A stretch of DNA of 64,000 nt from Oopsacas minuta. Its lineage: Eukaryota > Animalia > Porifera. Positions 3,781 through 38,568 of the stretch are shown piece by piece. Every line of letters starts with the position of its first letter. Within the stretch, counting starts at the first letter, position 1. The stretch is from assembly GCA_024704765.1 (NCBI GenBank), contig JAKMXF010000313.1, forward strand, positions 347,515-411,514, written 5' to 3'. The translations under genes and the position numbers were made by a program. A model generated the notes under the pieces. That model did no database searches and had not been told where the DNA came from. It worked only from the letters and a program-made list of their open reading frames with translations.

Positions 3781-5122
3781 CCCCTCATTCATTATTCAAT
3801 GTATCCGATTTCAACTTGTAATATATGCGTTGTGACCTTATAAGCAAAAGATAATACAAGTTTACAGTTAGATATGTAAGAATTAAATAAGAAATTACTG
3901 TTTACTATTGTTTGGCTTATTTCGGCATATTGTACCCGAGCTATCAAATATGAATAGTAAATGAATTTATGGAGTTATACTTTACTCTATCACAGCTGTG
4001 AGCCAAATTATATTTCATTTTCTAATCAAGAAGAGGATCTTAAATCAACTCTTAAAATATAAGAGATTTCTATCACACAGTTTTGAGTATAAAGAATTTA
4101 TTTGTATTTAACTCTTTGGACATTTTTTAGGTTTAAAAGTTAATTAAATAATTAATTAACTCTACTCCAAACCCAATCAAGAACCTACCAATACATATAT
4201 GATATATTATATAATATTTAGAGGAATAAAGAGTATAGAGAACCTGACAAGAGTATGTTAATAGAAGTTCGAGGATAATTACTCAATAGTTAATACTTAG
4301 ATGCCAAGTGTTATCACCAAATTTCAAGACAAACTGCTAAATACACACATAGATGTAACCTTTTTCATCAATCCGTGAGATTTCTTCAGAAGTTCCGTGA
4401 GATTTGGCATCTCTACATCAAAATTACAGTGGAGGAGACTAAATAACGTGAGATTTTAGAGCCGCTAAAATCCGTAAGACTACGGATAACCCCATTAGTT
4501 TGTTATCTCTGTACACACTTCAGAATAAATTTATACATTCCACAATCCTACGACTAAAGTATTCAGTATTCAGTCAGGGACAAGCCAAGGAGACTTGTTT
4601 GTAGGAAGAATAATAAGTTCTCATAAGAGAATTAATTGAAGCGCTGATATCGGAGCTGTTATCTAGCTCACCTTATCATACTAGGATTATGATCAGTTAT
4701 TCTAAGTCCTATCATTTGAATGCATTTGTATGCAAATTCTCGAGAACCTCCTAATATCTTTTATATATCTATCCGTCAGTCCTCTCTAAGTTTTGTCATA
4801 TATCCATGGTATCATATTATCTTCCTTAGCACTTAAAGAATAATAGAAATACTGTTATACTTGTATCGAGTTTCAATATTGTTTTCAGAATTTTTGAAAA
4901 TTCTTCACTCTTATGCTTGGTATTTTTCCTAATTTTACATTTACTGAGTCATATCAGGGAAATTAATAAGATTAATCATATTTAATTATTAAGAAGAACG
5001 CTTCAATGTGCTAGATTATCAAACTATAAATGGAAAAAGTTTTCTACGAACTAGATATTGCATGTAATGTGTTATTTATTGCCGTATTTCTTATATTGAA
5101 GTGTATAGCTGACTATTTGATA

Positions 5123-8100
5123 ATGGCGGCTACTAGCGGCTCGTTAGCCTTTGGTGACAATTTAACAGTACTGACGAAGAAAGATCTTGTCGAAGAATTG
5201 AATAAGCGAAATCTTAAAACGGTTGGAACTAAGGGTGTCCTCATAACCAGACTGAAATCTGTTCTCAAGAAAGAAAGTCAAGAAATGACAGAACCATCCC
5301 CTGAAATGGAAATACCGGAACACAAAGACGTCAGTCAAACAAACATAGATACTTTAAATTCATCAAAAGAAGACGAAATTCCTCTTCCTACATTCATATC
5401 CCCTGATTATGAGAATATTGATTCTGCTCAAGGATCCCCGGAGGATAAATTTGAGGATGACCAAGAGTCCAAGAAAGAACCTTCTCAAGAAATGGAAGAT
5501 ATTAATCAACAGGAGAAAGATCTGATGGATATTAGTAGTTCCTATTTTGAGCAGATTGATTCTATGTCAGACACTGGTGACCAACCAGAGGGTGTGTCAA
5601 ATGATGCAGAGTATGAGGTTCTAAGCGATAAGGAAAATCCTGAAGACTTTGATGATTTCTGTCCGATAGAAGGAGACAGCTACGAACAAGACATGACTGA
5701 ATTTGTCCAAACGGAAGGAGGAGAATTCATACCAGATCAGCCTCTGCCTTCTGAAGTATCTGAGGTGTTGTTGTATGAAGATGAACCAGCTGATCTAGAG
5801 GTTATTGACTATCAGGGAGGTGATGAGCATACAGAACCTATAGATTCACCAGATGAAGAGTTCCGCTTAGAGGGACAGGAACCTATATCTCCGTGTGATT
5901 CAGAGGAGTATCCTGTGGTCCTTCAAGAAACTACTGAGAAAAAGGAGAATAAAGCTAATTCAAATCAATCGAATGAAGATGAGGTTATACTCGATGTCGG
6001 AGGTGAAAAACTGGAAATCGATAATGTCGCTAAAAAGGATAAGTTTGATAAATACAAAGAAGTTAAGAATCAAGATCCTGAATGTAATCTCTGGATTAGT
6101 AACTTGTCAGAAGATACACGAGCTAGTACACTCAAGAATAAATTTACCCCACATGGCAATGTCATATCTGCGAAAATAGTCGCTAACGCATCGAAATCTG
6201 GCGAAAAGAACAAATTCTTCGGTTATGTAATTATGAGTAATGCAGAAGAAGCAGCTAAATGTATTCGAGATTTGACTAACTCAGAGATTGATGGAAAGCA
6301 GGTAATAGTTGAAATTGCTAAGGCTACTCTTCCTAATGTTGTTTCTAGATCTGGGAGGCTAGAGGAGAGAGAGAAGAGAGATCACTCAGATCGGGGGGAC
6401 TCCAGTCGATCTGGGAAGAGAGATAACTTTCAAGGTCGCAGGATAATTCTTGTAAGAGGAGAAAACGGACAGAAATTAGTGCGGGTTAGAGACAGCAATC
6501 ATTCAGCTGATAGTAGAACACATTACTCCTCTGTTAGACAGGTTAGAGAGGTTAGAAATGTAAGATCTCATCGTAGTGCCTCTCCTCGTGACCGCAGGAT
6601 ATCTATAGACAGACGAAATAGGTATTCTCCGCCTCCAAACCTCAGAGAAATGCATTCCAATGATCCATATCGTCGTCGTGTGGTCAGCAGGGATTATCCT
6701 TCATCCTCAAGCGGAATGGACAGCAAGAACTACGGATCTTACAGAGGACGTGGTTTGCATCAGGATTCTGGTTATGGTCGTGACGTATATTCCTCTCCGC
6801 GAATGAACCACTCTATGCGAGGGGTGGGCATGCATTCGCCGAGGTCGTTTGACCCCACTGGTGAGAAATCTAGGAGAGATGAGGATAAGAGGAGAATGGT
6901 TGACGAGATTAGAAGACATGAACAGCTGGAGAATGAAATTCGAAAACGCGAGCAAAGAGACAAAGAACGTCTATTGAAACAAATGCATGCTAGGGAAGCC
7001 GTAAAGGAGCAAGAATTTCGTGAGAGAGAAAGACAACTACATGAACGAGAACAAAACGAAAGACAGAAGAGAATGATGCTTGAAGAAGCACTCAGAAGTA
7101 AGGAAAAGAGAGAACGAGAATTGTTAAAAGAAAAGGAAATTCAATCAAAAATGTTGCAAGATCGAGAGCGTCTACTCGCTAAGCGCGACAAAGATGCTCA
7201 AAACCTGACTCAACTCCAACAAGAGTTGATTATCCTTGAACAGAAGCAGAAAGATGAAAAGTTAAAACTCGAACAAAGGTTGAAAGAGTATCAGAACAGG
7301 GAGAAGATTTTTGAAATGGAGCAACAGGATAGACATAGAAAGGATATGGAAGCTAAAGTTAGAATGGATGAAGACCAGGAGAGGAGAATGAAAGAGTCCA
7401 AGAAGCGTTATGAGGATATGTCTACCCCAAGACAAACAATAAAACGACCTTTCGAAGAATCAAGAAGAGAATATTCTGAGAAACGGGTAAGAGATGATCC
7501 ACATAGTCAGTTCTATCCTTCTGGAGATAATCAGAGATGGAAGGATGTTGACCGATCGAAGGGTTCTGCTCCTAGCCACGCCTACAGGCCGGATAGTTAT
7601 CCTAAGAGAGGAGCTCCTCCCCAGCACTCCACCCACTCCTCTGGTCACGGGACTCGTTATCCCAAACAATCTGAAGATTACTACGATAATACTGATTCAG
7701 GTAGCCATTCTTATTCCCATGCTACTCGACCATACTCATCGCGTGGTGGGCATTCTTATAGGGGTAGAAACTTTCCAACCAAATATTCAGACAATGAGAG
7801 ATCCATGGTCCAGTCAGGCCAGAGCAAGAAAATGAGGGATCACAGTCCCTCCCCCCAGGACCGTTATTCTTATCCTCGGTCAGAGCGGCACTCTATGAGT
7901 GGGAGTGGGAGTCAGTCTCACAAGTCTCATTCAGACAGTCGGTCTGGTCCGCCCTCAGGGTCTTCCGGGATGGGAGGCAGACAGAGTGACAGATACGGAG
8001 AGAGGCAGTCTAGTGGAAAGAGCATGCATCGTGACAGCTCAGGACACGGGATCGGTGAATGGCACTCTCGCTCTTATGGCTCCAGTTCAGGGCAGCAAAG

Positions 8101-30695: not shown

Positions 30696-33021
30696 GGGAA
30701 AGAAGCAATTAAATGAAGAACTTCGTTCAGAGGTTCTACTTAACTGTTGGGAGCCTCCCGACAATTATAAATTTCCTCCAATTATCCAAGGAGGTAGGGA
30801 GAGATATTTTAATAGCAAATGGCTTATTAACTACACGTGGCTTGCTTATTCTGAAATTTATCAGGCGGGTTTTGCAAAATTTGTGTCCTATTTCTCGACC
30901 GACATGATAAACGTGTGGGTAAGGGGGTTCACAAATGGTGGGCTCCTTAGTAACCAAGGCATTGACCAACTACAAGTGTGCAATTGAATTATTCAACAAA
31001 CATAGTCAGTTAATTTATCATAGAGACTGTTGTGTAGCATGCGAAACTTTCAAAAGGACGGTAGGGACACCGAGACTTGATATTCAAGACCAGCTTGATC
31101 GACAAAGAATTAAACAGAAACTGTTAAACCGCCAGAGATTAGTACCTATAATCGAGACCATCCTCTTGTTAGGTAGACAGGAGTTATCATTTCGCGGACA
31201 CAGGGGTGAATCTAAAGAATTAGATATTGAAGAACCGAAAGAAAATGATGGTAACTTTCGTGCTGCGCTAAGATTACCTCTAAGAGCAGGAGATATTGTA
31301 TTGAAAGACCACCTCGAATCCAGTGGATCCAATTCTAAATATTTAAGTCCAATGATCCAGAACGAGGTTATCAAGATTAGTGGAACATTGATTTGTCAAA
31401 CAATAGCTTCCGAAGTCCAGAAAAGCATACCATTCTCTATTTTAGCAAATGGATCAGCGGATGTTTCTGCTCATGAGCAGCTTTCAATTTTCAGTTCGCT
31501 ATGTTTTTCGATCGGAATGCTCAGTCTTTTTAAGGGAAATGTTTCTTGGCTTTGTTACAGTTTCAGATCTAACTGGAGAAGGAAAGACAATCATTTCATT
31601 CTGTGTTTCTACTGGATTAGATTTGAATAACATGGTGGGATTAGGTTCGGATGGTGCTAGCGCTATGTCTGGGAAGTTCAAAGGAGTGCAGGCATGAATC
31701 CGCGAATTATATCCAATGGTTCACTACACACACTTCATCGCACAGCTTAAATTTAGCAATTGGAAAAGCTAACACTGTTATTCTTGGAAGCGTATTTTCT
31801 AATCTTTCCTCCATAATTTCCTTCTTTCATGGTTACCCTTTGCGAGAAGAGAAACTACGCCAAGCAATATGCCCAGAATCTAAGCGACAGCGATTGAAAA
31901 CAATTTGTGCAACAAGATGGGTCGAACGACATGATGCAATTCTTGTGTTCATGGAATTAATCGAGGCAATTGTTACCTATTTAGAAGAACTAACTCTTGT
32001 ACCAGGAGAGACAGGTTCGAAAGCAAACCAACTTGTTCTTGTCTGCACATTATTTGACTTTCTATACTCAAGTACACTTTTAGAATATCCAAGCGCCCTT
32101 CTGCTGACAGTTTCTAAGCAATTACAGTCGCCAACATTGGATTTGGGTAACATTTGCTCAATGATTGAAAATGTGATTTCCATTTTCGAAAGGAAATGAA
32201 TCAAAATGATGCTTGTACGCGAATTTACATTAAGGCTAAATCTAGAGCTGAAACTTTGGGGGTTTCAGTTACTTTACCAAGAGCTTTTGCAAGAAGTAAC
32301 CCCGAATTCGTTGGAAAAGAAGAGTCTTTTTATAAAAAATGCGTTTTCATTCCATATTATCAGTGGCTGATTGAACAACTGAACTTAAGGTTTTTGAAGC
32401 ACAAACAAAGTTTTTACAATTCAGAAACTTATTCCAAGTTTTGGGAAATATGCCAACAGAGGAAATGCAAAAAGTATTAGAGCCCATGGACACAATATTA
32501 CATTTAGCTCTTCAGAAATCGAGGCACAAATGAAAATTTGGGTTGAAAAGAAATGGAAGGGAGAGCTGATTCCTGATAATGCTGTTAACTCATTAGCACA
32601 CTGCAATAGAGACATAATGCCGGCTATATTCCGTTTCCTACAGATATTTTCAACGATACCAATAACAACCGCAACAAGTGAAAGGAGCTTTTCAACCATG
32701 AAGCGTATAAAGACCTATCTTAGAAATTCTATGGGAGAAGAAAGATTATCAGGTCTTGCAATTATATCTGCCCATGGACGTGAAATACAAAATTGAACCA
32801 GAGGAAATCATAAATGAAATAGCTAAAATTAACAGGAAGGTTGACATTGTTTTGTAGTGTATCTGTAGTATTAGTAAAGACAACAATATTTCAAGTGGTT
32901 TTGGGACATAGCCCCGTAAGTATTCCACTGATTGGGATAGATAAATATAAATTGCAATCAATCATCAAAATATTTCGGGGGGGCCATGGCCCCCTTGTCC
33001 CCTCCCCTGACTACGCCACTG
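30696..33021 (+). mobile_element. Decayed hAT transposon (PRKRIR/THAP12/ZMYM-like transposase pseudogene) with intact right TIR
   Basis: Fragmented ORFs 30679-32796: WL.YTWLAYS zinc-finger-like segment, DUF4371-like GRQELSFRGH and YLSPMIQNEVI, TRWVERHDA, and dimerisation motif TATSERSFSTMKRIKTYLRNSMGEERLSGLA. First catalytic Asp reads Asn (SILANGSAD). Right TIR CCTGACTACGCCACTG ends at 33021; left end not found. Confidence 0.88.
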
Positions 33022-33300: not shown

Positions 33301-33414
33301 TAAAGATATATAATTGAAAACGTGATCTAAAAATGGAAATGAAAAAGGTAACAAACAAATATTCAAAAATCTATTTAGTTTAGCTCTACAAAGCTGCCGT
33401 AAATACATCCAGAC

Positions 33415-34548
33415 ATGGGCAGTAACGAAGGAAATAGATTTTTGGTGATTGATAATGGTTCAGGAATGATTAAGGCAGGATTTGCAGGAGATGATGAACC
33501 TCGTGCTGTCTTCCCAGCTATTGTGGGGAGACCTCGTCACAGTGGTATCATGGTTGGTATGAGTCAGAAACATTACTATGTTGGAGATGAATCTCAGAGT
33601 AAACGTGGCATCTTAGCTCTATATTATCCCATGGAACACGGTATAGTTACTAACTGGGATGATATGGAGCATATCTGGCATCATACATTCTATAATGAGT
33701 TACGTGTAGCACCAGAAGAATGTGGAGTTCTGATGACAGAATCACCTCTCACCCCTAAGGCTAACCAAGAGAAAATGGTCCAGATAATGTTTGAAACATT
33801 CAGCATTCCATTTCTCCACCAATGTATCCATCCTATACTATCTCTCTATGCTTCTGGTCGTACTACAGGACTTGTTATTGACTCTGGAGCAAGTGTGTCT
33901 CATGTTGTTCCTATCTTCAAGCAACATGCATGTACACATGCAATTCTACGTCAGGATATTGCAGCTGGTAGAGACTTGACTGACTACTTGATGAAGATAC
34001 TGTGTGAGCGTGGTTACTCATTTACTACGTCAGCAGAACGAGAGATAGTTCGGGACATTAAGGAGAAGTTGGGTTACGTGTCTATAAACTTTGATGAAGA
34101 GATCCATGAGAGTGAACCTGATGATACTCTCGAGAAGAAGTATGAATTACCCGATGGACAGGTAATAACTATTGGGAATGAGAGATACCGTTGTACCGAA
34201 CCAATCTTCAAGCCTTCTCTCATAGGAATGAGTGCTTGTGGGATACAAGATCTAGTCTATAGTTCTGTCATGAAGTGTGACATTGACTTACGTAAATACC
34301 TCTTCAAGAATATTATCCTATCTGGAGGTAACACAATGTTTTGTGGATACTCACAGCGTATTGAGAAGGAAGTAACCCAATTAGCTCCAACATGTGATAA
34401 AGTAAAAGTTATAGCTCCTCCTGAGAGGAAATACAGTACTTGGATTGGAGGATCTATTCTAGCTTCAATGACTGATTTCTATAAAATTTGTATATCTCAT
34501 GATGAGTATGAGGAGTATGGACCCTCTCTTGTACATAGAAGATTTTAA
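33415..34548 (+). CDS. Divergent actin, intronless
   Basis: [58 protein letters not shown]; 377 aa with many substitutions relative to conventional actin. Confidence 0.92.
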
Positions 34549-34616
34549 TTGTAAATTTGTATATATTTGTCTCTCCTATGGTACCCAGAAGTTTCGTCCA
34601 ATTGAAAAGTCCCCAT

Positions 34617-36119
34617 GGGCCAGTTTGGGCTGCCTAAAACTGGTCTGGAGGACCAATTTGTATTGTCATATATCTCCACTAGTTGACGCGAGGATTTGAA
34701 CTCTTGCGTCCAGCATGGTTCTTTTTTTGGCACCCCTTGACTGCTGATGGGTGTATCTTGGAGGCTTACTGGCAGAACATATTGCATTTTTTATCGAATT
34801 ATAATTTGCTAATGAACCTGGTGTTACCTTGTCTTGTCTGTCATTTATTTTTACTTTTGGGCACGAGGATTTGAAATTTTGCTTGGATTCGTGTCCAGCG
34901 TGGTTGCTTCAAAATGCACTTGTCAGCACGACTTGGTTGCTGACAAGTGTATTTTGAAGCATTCCTGATAAGAGGATATGACTTGGTTATCGAATTAACT
35001 AATGAACCTGGCGTTACCTTACGAGTATTTCTTAACATCTTTTGGAGTTTTTTATAATTTTTGTTTGATTAATTCACTTTACTTTCAAACTTGAAATCTT
35101 TGCCGACCAATTTTGCCCTAAATTATTTTAACATTTTCTACTTCTTTCTTTCTATCAGAATAGCTACCTCTATGCCAGGGTGTTTAACATCGTAATGAGT
35201 TAGTTATATTCGGAATAACAGGTATAACTCAATTTGTTCGCCCAGTGTTATAGGACGAATAATGCTAACAAAACTGTGAATTCCATTATCTGCAAGTATG
35301 TGATGTTAACTCGATGAAATGCATAAATTAGGAACTAATAATTCTGATAATTAATTAAAGTTATGGGCTGACACCAATAGTTGCTATGTACTGAGTGAGT
35401 CTATAACATTATGGATCGTCTACAAGTTCTATGAAACAGCTGTGCTACAATGCTCATGCCGACCGTTTTTTAAAGACATGAAACACGTGACAACTTATTT
35501 CTCAGCAAACTAAGCAAAAGCAATCATCATGCAGTGCCAGTACCTTTAAAGGACCCTCCATGAAGTACCGGGTACTTCGTGGAAATAATTTTGAAAATAG
35601 GACCCACCACCAAGCTATGGGTCCATTATCTCCTGAGTGACGCCCCTGTCCATTTCCTGAAACATTTCCTAGCGTCAGAGCGCGGAGACAACGGTTATAC
35701 TCTGGACAACCAGTGGTGGACCCAAGGGGACGAATTGGGCATTTTCCCAGATTTGAGGCCCCCAGGTCTGCCAGATCCTCAAGCTGTCACGAAAAATATG
35801 GTCCTACCTAGCCGAAATTGGTCCAGCAAAGATTTGTCCTAGAAAGTAGAGTGAATTAATCAAAAGAAAACGATGAAAACTCCAAAGGATGTTAACAAAT
35901 ACTGGTAAGGTAACACCAAGTTCATTAGCAAATTATAATTCGATAAAAATGCAATATGTTCTGCCAGTAAGCCTCCAAGATACACCCATCAGCAGCCAAG
36001 GGGTGCCAAAAAAAGGACTATGCTGGACGCAAGAGTTCAAATCCTCGTGTCAACTAGTGGAGATATATGACAATACAAATTGGTCCTCCAGACCAGTTTT
36101 AGCCAGCCCAAACTGGCCC
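34617..36119. repeat. Large inverted repeat: two oppositely oriented copies of a repeat family around a spacer of about 700 bp
   Basis: 34617-34830 is the reverse complement of 35907-36119 (over 90% by eye); 34990-35112 matches 35815-35925. Confidence 0.85.
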
Positions 36120-36461
36120 TGGATCGGGGGACCAGATTTGGCAGCCAAAATTGGTCCAACCAGAGCACTTTTGGCTCGAAAAATTTTTGCGCAACAAGGC
36201 CACCACTGCCCAATATATATATTTAGATTTTGCCCAGGGTATGCAAAATCCTCCAACCGCCCCTGTGGACAACACAATGTGGGTATCCTTGGTCTCTGGT
36301 CTTCCATGGAAGTTCCGCTCGACGAACATTCCACTATTCGAGCAATCTTGACATTAATCCAAGTTTAAAATGATGTCCTACAGTAAGAATAGTGAGCATT
36401 GCATATCTATGTCGTTATATTGTAAATCCCTGAGGGTACCTATTATCAGAGTTCCACTGTA

Positions 36462-38568
36462 TATGCTACTAGATAAAAGGTTTGAGTATACAAGTGCGTA
36501 TGTATTTTAATGAGGGAGTGATAGTATGGCCGCTCTTTTTGCATAATCGAAGACTTGCAACTTTTCTCATACTATTTTGTTGCAATGAAGAGCAGGACAT
36601 GAAGAGTGCCAATGTTTGTAAAGAGATGCTCGAGAAGGGACACTCCTCTCCTATCTATCCACAATTATCACTTGATAAATCCGCCTTTCTTTTCGACTCA
36701 CTTGAGGTCGGTAAAACTAAGTATTTAGAATTTCGACGTACATTACTTTCTGAAGATCTCAAGTTACCAAGCTACATTATTGTAGCTAAACATCAGTCTC
36801 AAATTAATTTGCTGGATGAGGTGCGTATAATTCATAGAGAATTTCCATGTGGAGTAGGTATTTCTACACCAGACTACTCACCATACAGTTGAACGAATTG
36901 TATCTAACTTAAGTCTTGATAACCTTGTTAATTGTCTATCCTCTTAAAGTTCGAGTATCCGATGGCTTAGATGGATCTGTGTGTCATCGAGTTTACCAGC
37001 AAGCTTTATCTAACCCTGACCTCTCGACTCCAACCTTCATTTTATTTGGTTTCAAGGTTAACGCAATCATAAATGCAAATGATCATATCCTATGGAAACC
37101 TCATCATCTGAATTCACCATTTTGCACTCGACCAGTTGCCCTCTTAGCCCTTCCAGAAAATGAAGAGAGTGTCAAGTGTTTAATGGACTCATTAATAAAT
37201 AACGAAACTTCAACTATTGAAGAGAGTGGTTTGTGTTTACAGAATGGCAATGCAGAGGTCAAGATCATAATATCTCATTTCGATACAAAGATGGCAAAAA
37301 TCTTAAGCGGTGCTGGTGGTGCTAATTCCCAAATGTGTACTGCAGCGTTCAAACAGATACACAATATTAGCATAGTTCAAAATGGCTTTACCATAAATAA
37401 GACAATCCATGATGCACGTGATGTATTTGACGAGGTTGATGAAGAAGAATTTTGTCTTTGCCAACAAATCAAAGATTCAATTTAACACACAAACCGATCT
37501 CAGAAAAAGATATCATATCAGCTTCTCCTCTACATGCATATTTGAGAACATTTAGTTGGTTCCTATTAGTGATTTGCCATTTACAGTGTGGTGCTACTCA
37601 AAAAATGGTCACCAACTTCGCCAAAAATTCTTGGTGCCAAGAAATATATTACTAGCTTTATTAAGGAAAAACTTAGTATATCCATGACACACCATCAGTC
37701 CAAGGCGGAACCACAACAACCGGAAATGTTGTTCAGAGATGCTTCACAAGTAGAGATGATACTGTGCAAGGATATTTATGGTTGTTCCTCAAGAGACACA
37801 TCAAGTTGTCACTACAATCTTTAATAATTTGAGTGCTATCTTGAGATTGTATAATAGCAACAGGAAAGTGGACACCTGGCCTTGACAATGTAGAGACCTA
37901 CGAATCCATTTTGATCAATTTTTCATGGGCACATGTAACCCCTACTTTACATAAACTTCTAGTCCATGCACCACAAATAATTGCAGATCATAATGATGGG
38001 TTTGGCTTAGAAGATTTGTCTGAAGAAGGCCTTGAATCTTGCGATAAATTGGTCAGGCGATACCGTGAGAGACTCTCAAGAATATTTAGCTTTGAGGACA
38101 ACTTACCTCTCAAAGTGATCCAATTTTAGCATCCTTTCGTAATAATACCAAAAAAGATTCGGAGCCAGATCTATCTGAGTTGAAAAGCTGTCAAGATGTT
38201 TTGGTGAATTCACTAATTATAAATACGTTATAGTTAGTTCAATGAACGGTAGGTCATTTCAACAAGAAATGTGGTTTCATAAGTTTATAAAAATGTACAT
38301 TAAATAGTGTTAATAATATCAAAACATAAAATATTCAATTTCTGAACATATAACTCACAAATTGCCTTAATTATAATCGATAAAAAAAACAAAATATTTT
38401 TGAATGTGACAATGACGTCATTACTTTCACACCCAAAGACTTAGAAAAAATCTAGTTACGTCAATCGATCCCTTGGGTATGATTCCCCATATGTCAATAA
38501 TATAGTTTAATACGTTATCTAGTACCCTAATACCTACGTTCAGGTTTTGGCCATTTCGTGCCACTGTG
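36462..38568 (+). mobile_element. Transib/RAG1-core-like transposon, frame-shifted transposase with right TIR
   Basis: DGLDGS..HRVYQQ (Asp at 36970), CTRP, HFDTKM (Asp at 37282), SPLHAYLR, TPTLHKLLVH, SEEGLES..K..RRYR (Glu at 38034). The terminus reads CACAGTGGCACGAAATGGCCAAAACC on the minus strand from 38568. The 5' side abuts a pogo-like end at about 36461. Confidence 0.85.

Follow-up and report, generated by a model that had tools for sequence, protein, structure and literature searches.

The 64-kb stretch of Oopsacas minuta DNA analysed here (64,000 nucleotides, hereafter the window) carries on its forward strand, at positions 33415-34548, an uninterrupted actin open reading frame (ORF) of 377 codons plus a stop codon; no other actin-like sequence was found in the 64-kb window. 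The encoded protein matches the Pfam Actin domain (PF00022) along its full length (410.5 bits, residues 8-377 on profile positions 5-409 of 410), aligns with conventional actins of the PDB at E values of about 1e-177 with a single one-residue gap, and has exclusively actins among its best 60 PDB matches. Its mean identity to 21 conventional actins is 68%. AlphaFold2 run on a 40-sequence alignment yielded a mean pLDDT of 39 and a pTM of 0.33, a technical failure due to an alignment that was too shallow and made of too similar sequences rather than evidence of disorder. Since this model is unusable, the fold assignment relies on the sequence alone. The features of the coding sequence (CDS) are the following, with residues of the window protein numbered as the actin number + 2 through A183 and + 3 past the inserted A184:

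33415-34548, forward strand: divergent actin CDS without intron, identical to the deposited O. minuta protein P0197
33415-33441, forward strand: variable N-terminal nine codons (MGSNEGNRF), with weak DNA similarity to the close paralogs
33751-33753, forward strand: codon T113, corresponding to actin N111T, a change private to this copy
33805-33834, forward strand: FLHQCIHP block, corresponding to actin 131-138 (AMYVAIQA in conventional actin), with Q137H plus the family-fixed A131F, M132L, Y133H, V134Q, A135C, and A138P
33889-33894, forward strand: codons A159 and S160 of the P2 loop, corresponding to actin D157A and G158S
33916-33927, forward strand: W-loop FKQH in place of actin Y166-E167-G168-Y169, with F, K, and H fixed in the family
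33964-33966, forward strand: inserted codon A184, between actin A181 and G182, found in 25 of 28 family members
34474-34491, forward strand: DFYKIC, corresponding to actin 351-356 (TFQQMW), with T351D, Q354K, and W356C fixed in the family

An earlier note, based on the letters of this DNA, had described an intact but strongly divergent actin with altered hydrolysis site, P2 loop, and groove receiving the D-loop of the neighbouring subunit, and the alignment supports this description down to single residues. Gln137 is replaced by His (codon 33829) and Ala138 by Pro, DSGDG has become DSGAS (D157A at 33889, and G158S), YEGY at actin positions 166-169 reads FKQH, one residue has been inserted (RQDIAAGRD versus RLDLAGRD), Trp356 is Cys, Cys374 is missing from a protein that ends in HRRF, and the acidic N-terminus is lost (MGSNEGNRF). 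G13-S14-G15, K18, H73, and H161 are kept, and the 377 codons contain neither stop nor frameshift. Among the residues of the canonical actin set, the window protein thus lacks Q137, D157, and G158 and retains D154, H161, and S14. All the changes that the note listed are present, but comparison with relatives narrows the scope of several of them: only O. minuta has His137 and Ser158 (position 158 is Gly in the other members), the acidic N-terminus is missing in this copy alone, its paralogs beginning with MVSTDEDVYN, and C374 persists in one of the family's two subclades. In the aligned gene body, the non-synonymous changes private to this copy are V43I, K68Y, I71M, and N111T (actin numbering), the last one affecting a residue that we take to be the partner of R177 in the phosphate-release gate.

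The exact window protein was already public in the O. minuta assembly GCA_024704765.1, so that the guess of a glass-sponge host made in the note proved right. This genome encodes four copies that form one cluster at 90% protein identity or more, namely the window copy, P0198 (on the same contig), and P0010 and P0199, which lie on another contig in inverted orientation to each other, with about 16 kb between them. A 93%-identical protein called ‘Actin-4’ is likewise a paralog within the O. minuta genome and not an ortholog. It had first raised the possibility that the window belongs to a sister species of O. minuta, which was rejected because the O. minuta assembly contains the exact protein. 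On O. minuta contig JAKMXF010000332, loci L001 and L005, an inverted pair about 16 kb apart, flank an ankyrin-repeat gene and have an identical N-terminus and several variants in common. L001 carries the change G15E in the first phosphate loop, whereas the window copy retains G15. A fifth, more distant copy (P0124, locus L006) has its frame shifted by a net 7-nt deletion near codon 325. At this locus (L006:10001-11125, contig JAKMXF010000327) DNA identity is 83% and the old C-terminus reads cleanly in another frame. Either L006 became a pseudogene very recently or the assembly is wrong here.

About 25 further proteins carrying the same derived motifs come from ENA assemblies, which are other glass sponges: the glycine dehydrogenase (GcvP) encoded beside one of these actins shares 86% identity with its O. 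minuta counterpart, with the next named match at 58% or less. Four more relatives lie at 74-91%. In a maximum-likelihood tree (IQ-TREE) rooted on plant and protist actins, 29 divergent actins formed one clade with 100/100 support, on a stem of 0.31 changes per site, nested among conventional actins. Within this clade the O. minuta copies grouped with 99/94 support inside the second of two subclades, and the subclades track the source samples, with the first type represented by at least seven copies in one sample and the other type found in another sample. The tree was built from actins only, and the exclusion of Arps is based on nesting plus the 68% identity to conventional actins. Because the clade is nested among conventional actins, its members are derived actins and not Arps, in agreement with the note.

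The derived motifs shared by the family (residue counts are over 28 members, the tree clade having 29) are FLHQCI-x-P, DSG-[AG]-[SG]-VSHVVPIFK-[QH]-H, DIA-x-GRD with the inserted residue, SGGN, and DF-x-K-x-C, all five of which occur in the window protein as well as in 25-28 of the 28 members. At 25 positions the family is fixed on a residue other than that fixed in conventional actin: H101C, A131F, M132L, Y133H, V134Q, A135C, A138P, I151L, L153I, T162V, Y166F, E167K, Y169H, P172T, L180I, M227L, P258T, L261I, E270S, H275Q, V287I, D292Y, T351D, Q354K, and W356C. Asn303 is also fixed in the family. Position 157 is always A or G and position 168 always Q or H, position 137 can be C, T, H, or N, and position 15 is Gly in only six of the 28 members. 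The proteins are rich in cysteine, with 10.6 residues on average versus 4.2 in conventional actins. By contrast, D11, S14, K18, D154, G156, H161, R183, R210, K213, E214, G301, and G302 are retained throughout, the D-loop is mostly kept and close to the conventional one, and so are the segments 195-205 and 283-290.

Residues 131-138 (hinge strand and helix), 166-169 (W-loop), and 349-356 (wall of the barbed-end groove) have therefore undergone fixed replacements throughout the family, and constraint has gone family-wide at Q137, D157, and G15, whereas the residues holding the nucleotide and the metal have been spared. As most of the sites in question are fixed on a new residue, or at least altered in every member, throughout the 29-member clade, the changes do not result from chance decay, and random decay would not yield such a pattern. 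It is rather a coordinated rebuild of three areas of the molecule, namely the hinge strand and helix, the P2 loop, and the groove lying between subdomains 1 and 3.

In all paralog pairs but one, DNA similarity begins 3-14 nt upstream of the ATG and stops 3-9 nt past the stop codon, and the flanks cannot be aligned despite a synonymous divergence of only 0.03-0.20. This restriction to the CDS is seen in O. minuta and in two other glass-sponge samples (loci L002, L007, L009, L003, and L008; ERZ25072730 and ERZ25071281). Moreover, comparison of the four O. minuta copies gives 12 parsimony-informative sites, which are distributed 4/3/5 over three incompatible groupings that are clustered along the gene. 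Together, the CDS-limited similarity and the mosaic variants indicate gene conversion among copies, acting on the coding sequence only. Retroposition does not explain the restriction to the CDS, since neither a poly(A) tract nor a shared UTR exists; the possibility that the intronless CDS is a retrocopy of a conventional actin was rejected for these reasons and because the ORF is intact. Outside the CDS, the window locus and the paralog locus L001 are the only pair to share any sequence, and three features border the coding sequence:

33405-33414, forward strand: stretch before the ATG conserved among paralogs, with a pyrimidine-rich tract and AG (33411-33412) at its end
34549-36547, no strand assigned: non-coding block shared with the paralog locus L001 only, at 98.65% identity
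34617-36119, no strand assigned: fold-back element within the shared block, whose inverted arms (34617-34830 and 35907-36119), each about 214 nt long, are 97-98% complementary

Between the window locus and L001, the CDS is more divergent (2.5%) than the adjoining non-coding DNA (1.35%, p = 0.022), which fits conversion of one of these two coding sequences by a third copy. The fold-back element begins 70 nt past the actin stop codon, and the ORFs on both of its arms start with the same peptide. On the other side of the gene, seven of the ten loci (window locus, L001, L004, L006, L002, L007, and L009) have a pyrimidine-rich tract and an AG 2-8 nt before the ATG. The AG at 33411-33412 may serve as acceptor site for a 5' UTR intron, which would explain why the similarity among copies starts there. 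A scan for TATA and poly(A) signals common to the paralogs found none, and a scan with bacterial promoter and terminator models, irrelevant to a sponge host, showed no enrichment. Just upstream, the segment 32946-33327 has 50-100 times the contig depth of its neighbourhood in all four sequencing runs that we examined (see below), with many loose ends into other copies, and it marks a highly repeated element. Further upstream (31651-32796), ORFs resemble, by eye only, remnants of hAT/ZBED-type transposases.

The selective constraint on these genes, estimated as dN/dS by the Nei-Gojobori method, depends on the time scale. Conventional actins typically have dN/dS values near zero. The divergent family, with 68% identity to conventional actins and dN/dS of 0.19-0.78, departs from this extreme conservation: values are 0.19-0.36 between the window gene and the genes of other species, 0.31-0.44 among paralogs within other species, and 0.51-0.78 in pairwise comparisons among the four close O. 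minuta copies. Pooling these four copies, we counted 50 non-synonymous and 20 synonymous changes, a proportion that does not differ significantly from the 78.5% of non-synonymous changes expected under neutrality (p = 0.10). All four copies are nevertheless devoid of stops and frameshifts, whereas in simulations 70 random substitutions left a stop-free ORF in only 6% of runs. The non-coding DNA common to the window locus and L001 has accumulated five single-base indels per 27 substitutions, so that several frameshifts would be expected in an unconstrained coding sequence. The integrity of the four ORFs therefore argues for maintenance. For the window copy alone it is weak evidence, since a single lineage with 10-25 substitutions is expected to keep a stop-free ORF 38-67% of the time. 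Over long periods constraint would thus be moderate, and in the recent O. minuta copies weak, in the manner of birth-and-death gene families.

Evidence bearing on transcription comes from four sequencing runs of one sample, of unrecorded library type and available as contigs only, which we compared with the locus over 5,701 bases at 99% likeness. In three of them the summed depth over the CDS is 1-3 times that of the flanks, which is what would be given by genomic DNA with collapsed paralogs. The fourth run, X2, has a summed contig depth of 4300-7700 over the CDS versus 83-130 in the flanks, a difference that five gene copies cannot explain. Adapters are of the TruSeq type in X2 and of the Nextera type in X1 and X4. 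At position 33945, where a synonymous letter is private to the window copy, X2 shows the window letter at a depth of 895, which suggests, within the limits of contigs from an unrecorded library type, that the window copy is transcribed.

From all these data, we consider that the ORF probably encodes a protein and belongs to a family of divergent actins, multi-copy and specific to glass sponges, that derives from conventional actin. The most serious alternative is that the window copy is a young redundant duplicate drifting towards a pseudogene, its ORF being intact because time has been short or because gene conversion has repaired it. Several observations are in line with such a drift: the dN/dS of 0.51-0.76 to its three closest paralogs, the pooled test that does not depart from neutrality, the CDS more diverged from L001 than the non-coding DNA next to it, the private changes at the N-terminus and at N111, the frameshifted sibling L006, and the position of the copy just downstream of the highly repeated element in a transposon-packed region, which also speaks against a functional gene. 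On the other hand, its 377 codons have neither stop nor frameshift (weak evidence for one copy, as said above), its private non-synonymous changes are few and G15 is kept, unlike in L001, and its private synonymous letter stands at a depth of 895 in X2 against 83-130 in the flanks. The earlier note had named a dN/dS near 1 without expression as the sign of a young pseudogene; the recent copies come close to it as far as dN/dS is concerned (0.5-0.8, p = 0.10), but ORF integrity and the long-term dN/dS favour function. We therefore regard the drifting duplicate as unlikely, and the best reading of the gene is that of a family member, functional now or until recently, under relaxed constraint.

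As a member of this divergent family, the protein would still bind ATP or ADP, with hydrolysis, nucleotide exchange, or phosphate release differing from those of conventional actin and most likely slower. The slow- or non-hydrolysing, structurally specialised actin that the note had proposed is plausible, and fits a family in which Q137, D157, and G15 are no longer constrained but the nucleotide-binding residues persist. The altered groove is predicted to face profilin, cofilin and other ADF-H proteins, WH2-type partners, and the D-loop of the neighbouring subunit. The protein would accordingly be a specialised isoform with its own partners or filaments instead of a bulk cytoskeletal actin. 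ADF-H domains dock in the groove corresponding to the rebuilt one. A bolder version of the same idea, to which we give little credit at present, is that glass sponges possess a second, private actin system, slow- or non-hydrolysing and with a rebuilt barbed-end groove, that would form its own long-lived filaments in the syncytium together with lineage-specific partners.

The changes in the cleft and groove could also be seen as those of a toxin-insensitive backup actin of the type of Chlamydomonas NAP1, working when poisons that target these sites hit the conventional actin. The groove (166-169 and 349-356) has been rebuilt where many sponge macrolides bind, D157, which we take to be a latrunculin-contact residue, is changed, and a residue has been inserted next to G182-R183, but we know of no actin toxin from hexactinellids. 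A 2025 review has proposed that sponge actins diversified against the sponges' own toxins, citing a Halichondria actin and NAP1 (PMC12444908). However, among the latrunculin contacts Y69, D157, R183, T186, and R210 (partly after PMC12444908), the window protein has changed D157 only (D157A), with the insertion beside G182-R183; it keeps R183, T186, and R210 as well as Y69, which is changed in NAP1 and in the Halichondria actin and is kept in 21 of the 28 family members. A toxin-insensitive role seems very doubtful.

The earlier note had also pointed to the actin reported in the axial filaments of glass-sponge spicules. According to this explanation the window protein would be that actin (‘silactin’), a stable, non-hydrolysing scaffold for silica deposition. 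The host is indeed a glass sponge, four hexactinellids have been reported to contain actin in their axial filaments (Ehrlich et al. 2022, PMC9009123), the database searched in that study (UniProt Porifera plus Swiss-Prot) predates the glass-sponge genomes and could not contain the divergent family, and an altered hydrolysis site would suit a static filament. But the filament peptides in the supplement of the same study (PMC9009123), which include [30 protein letters not shown] and [29 protein letters not shown], come from four glass sponges and bear the conventional DSGDG, YEGY, Q137, and A138, and the window protein departs from them at each of D157, G158, YEGY, Q137, and A138. The filaments were detected with an anti-beta-actin antibody and phalloidin (PMC9009123). 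In Aphrocallistes vastus, which has 43 actin-like genes, the only one upregulated in the growing osculum is said to match the actin of Ehrlich et al. (PMC10282587), and the silicification toolkit in the O. minuta genome paper lists only conventional actin (PMC10280926). The spicule link is therefore not supported, the published peptides being conventional exactly at the changed sites: the reported skeletal actin is conventional and nothing positive ties the divergent family to silica. An axial-filament role seems highly improbable.

Finally, placing the protein in a known Arp family, or regarding its gene as a processed retro-pseudogene derived from conventional actin, as the intronless and divergent CDS and the inclusion of Arps in the Pfam actin family might suggest, can practically be dismissed given the 68% identity, the nesting within conventional actins, the 60 best PDB matches all to actins, the absence of a poly(A) tract with similarity between copies ending at the stop codon (hence no shared 3' UTR), and the conservation of the family across species with dN/dS of 0.2-0.4.

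In comparison with known systems, the window protein resembles conventional actins such as Drosophila Actin-5C and human beta-actin in its full-length domain and same length, in keeping H73 together with D11, S14, K18, D154, G156, H161, R183, R210, K213, E214, and G301-G302, and in its near-conventional D-loop and conserved contact segments 195-205 and 283-290. It differs from them in the replacement of Q137, A138, D157, G158, the 131-135 strand, the W-loop (166-169), and 351-356, in the inserted residue, in the lack of C374 and of an acidic N-terminus, and in having 10 cysteines versus about four. With mammalian ACTL7A/B and ACTRT1-3 and Drosophila Arp53D it has in common an intronless CDS, a raised dN/dS, and lineage-specific gene turnover, but these fast-evolving, germline-biased proteins are far more diverged from actin and none of them is a close relative. 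Like the latrunculin-insensitive Chlamydomonas NAP1, it is a divergent paralog with an altered nucleotide cleft that exists beside a conventional actin; NAP1, by contrast, is single-copy, has Y69 changed, and has an inducible backup role shown experimentally.

Among sponges, the closest parallels are HdA6 of Halisarca dujardinii and HpA4 (XP_064405707) of Halichondria panicea, which are also lineage-specific actins with 67-74% identity to conserved actin and substitutions at functional sites (PMC12146513, PMC12444908), and which likewise coexist with conventional actin. HdA6 is 74% identical to the conserved actin and cell-type restricted (PMC12146513). The window gene has neither its intron at codon 89 nor its single-copy status, and, in contrast with the Halichondria protein, it keeps Y69. 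Neither HdA6 nor HpA4 appears among the best 120 relatives of the window protein, and the glass-sponge, HdA6, and HpA4 divergences are probably independent. ‘Non-conserved’ actins of O. minuta, A. vastus, and Euplectella were placed in one alignment figure in 2025 but left without analysis (PMC12146513), and our literature search found no paper describing the divergent glass-sponge clade, its fixed changes, or its concerted evolution. Divergent sponge actins are thus a recognised theme, and what is new here is the glass-sponge clade.

Actin is among the most conserved eukaryotic proteins, and a clade that keeps the fold and the nucleotide-binding residues yet frees Q137, D157, and G15 represents a natural experiment on the need for the actin ATPase. 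The family also bears on the live dispute over the organic core of glass-sponge spicules, in which a ‘special actin for glass’ is currently without support, and supplies copy-specific markers, located at 33415-33441, 33752, 33819, and 33945 for the window copy, and diagnostic peptides, e.g., [20 protein letters not shown], with which a skeletal role can be tested. The sharp confinement of paralog similarity to the CDS in three species cleanly illustrates concerted evolution in an animal lineage that branched off early. Other arrangements of the copies occur in the ENA glass-sponge assemblies: at locus L008 (ERZ25072730/ERZ25071281), two family members lie in tandem 2 kb apart, and L007 matches L002 at 97.6% over more than 5.5 kb, being either a segmental duplicate or a second haplotype.
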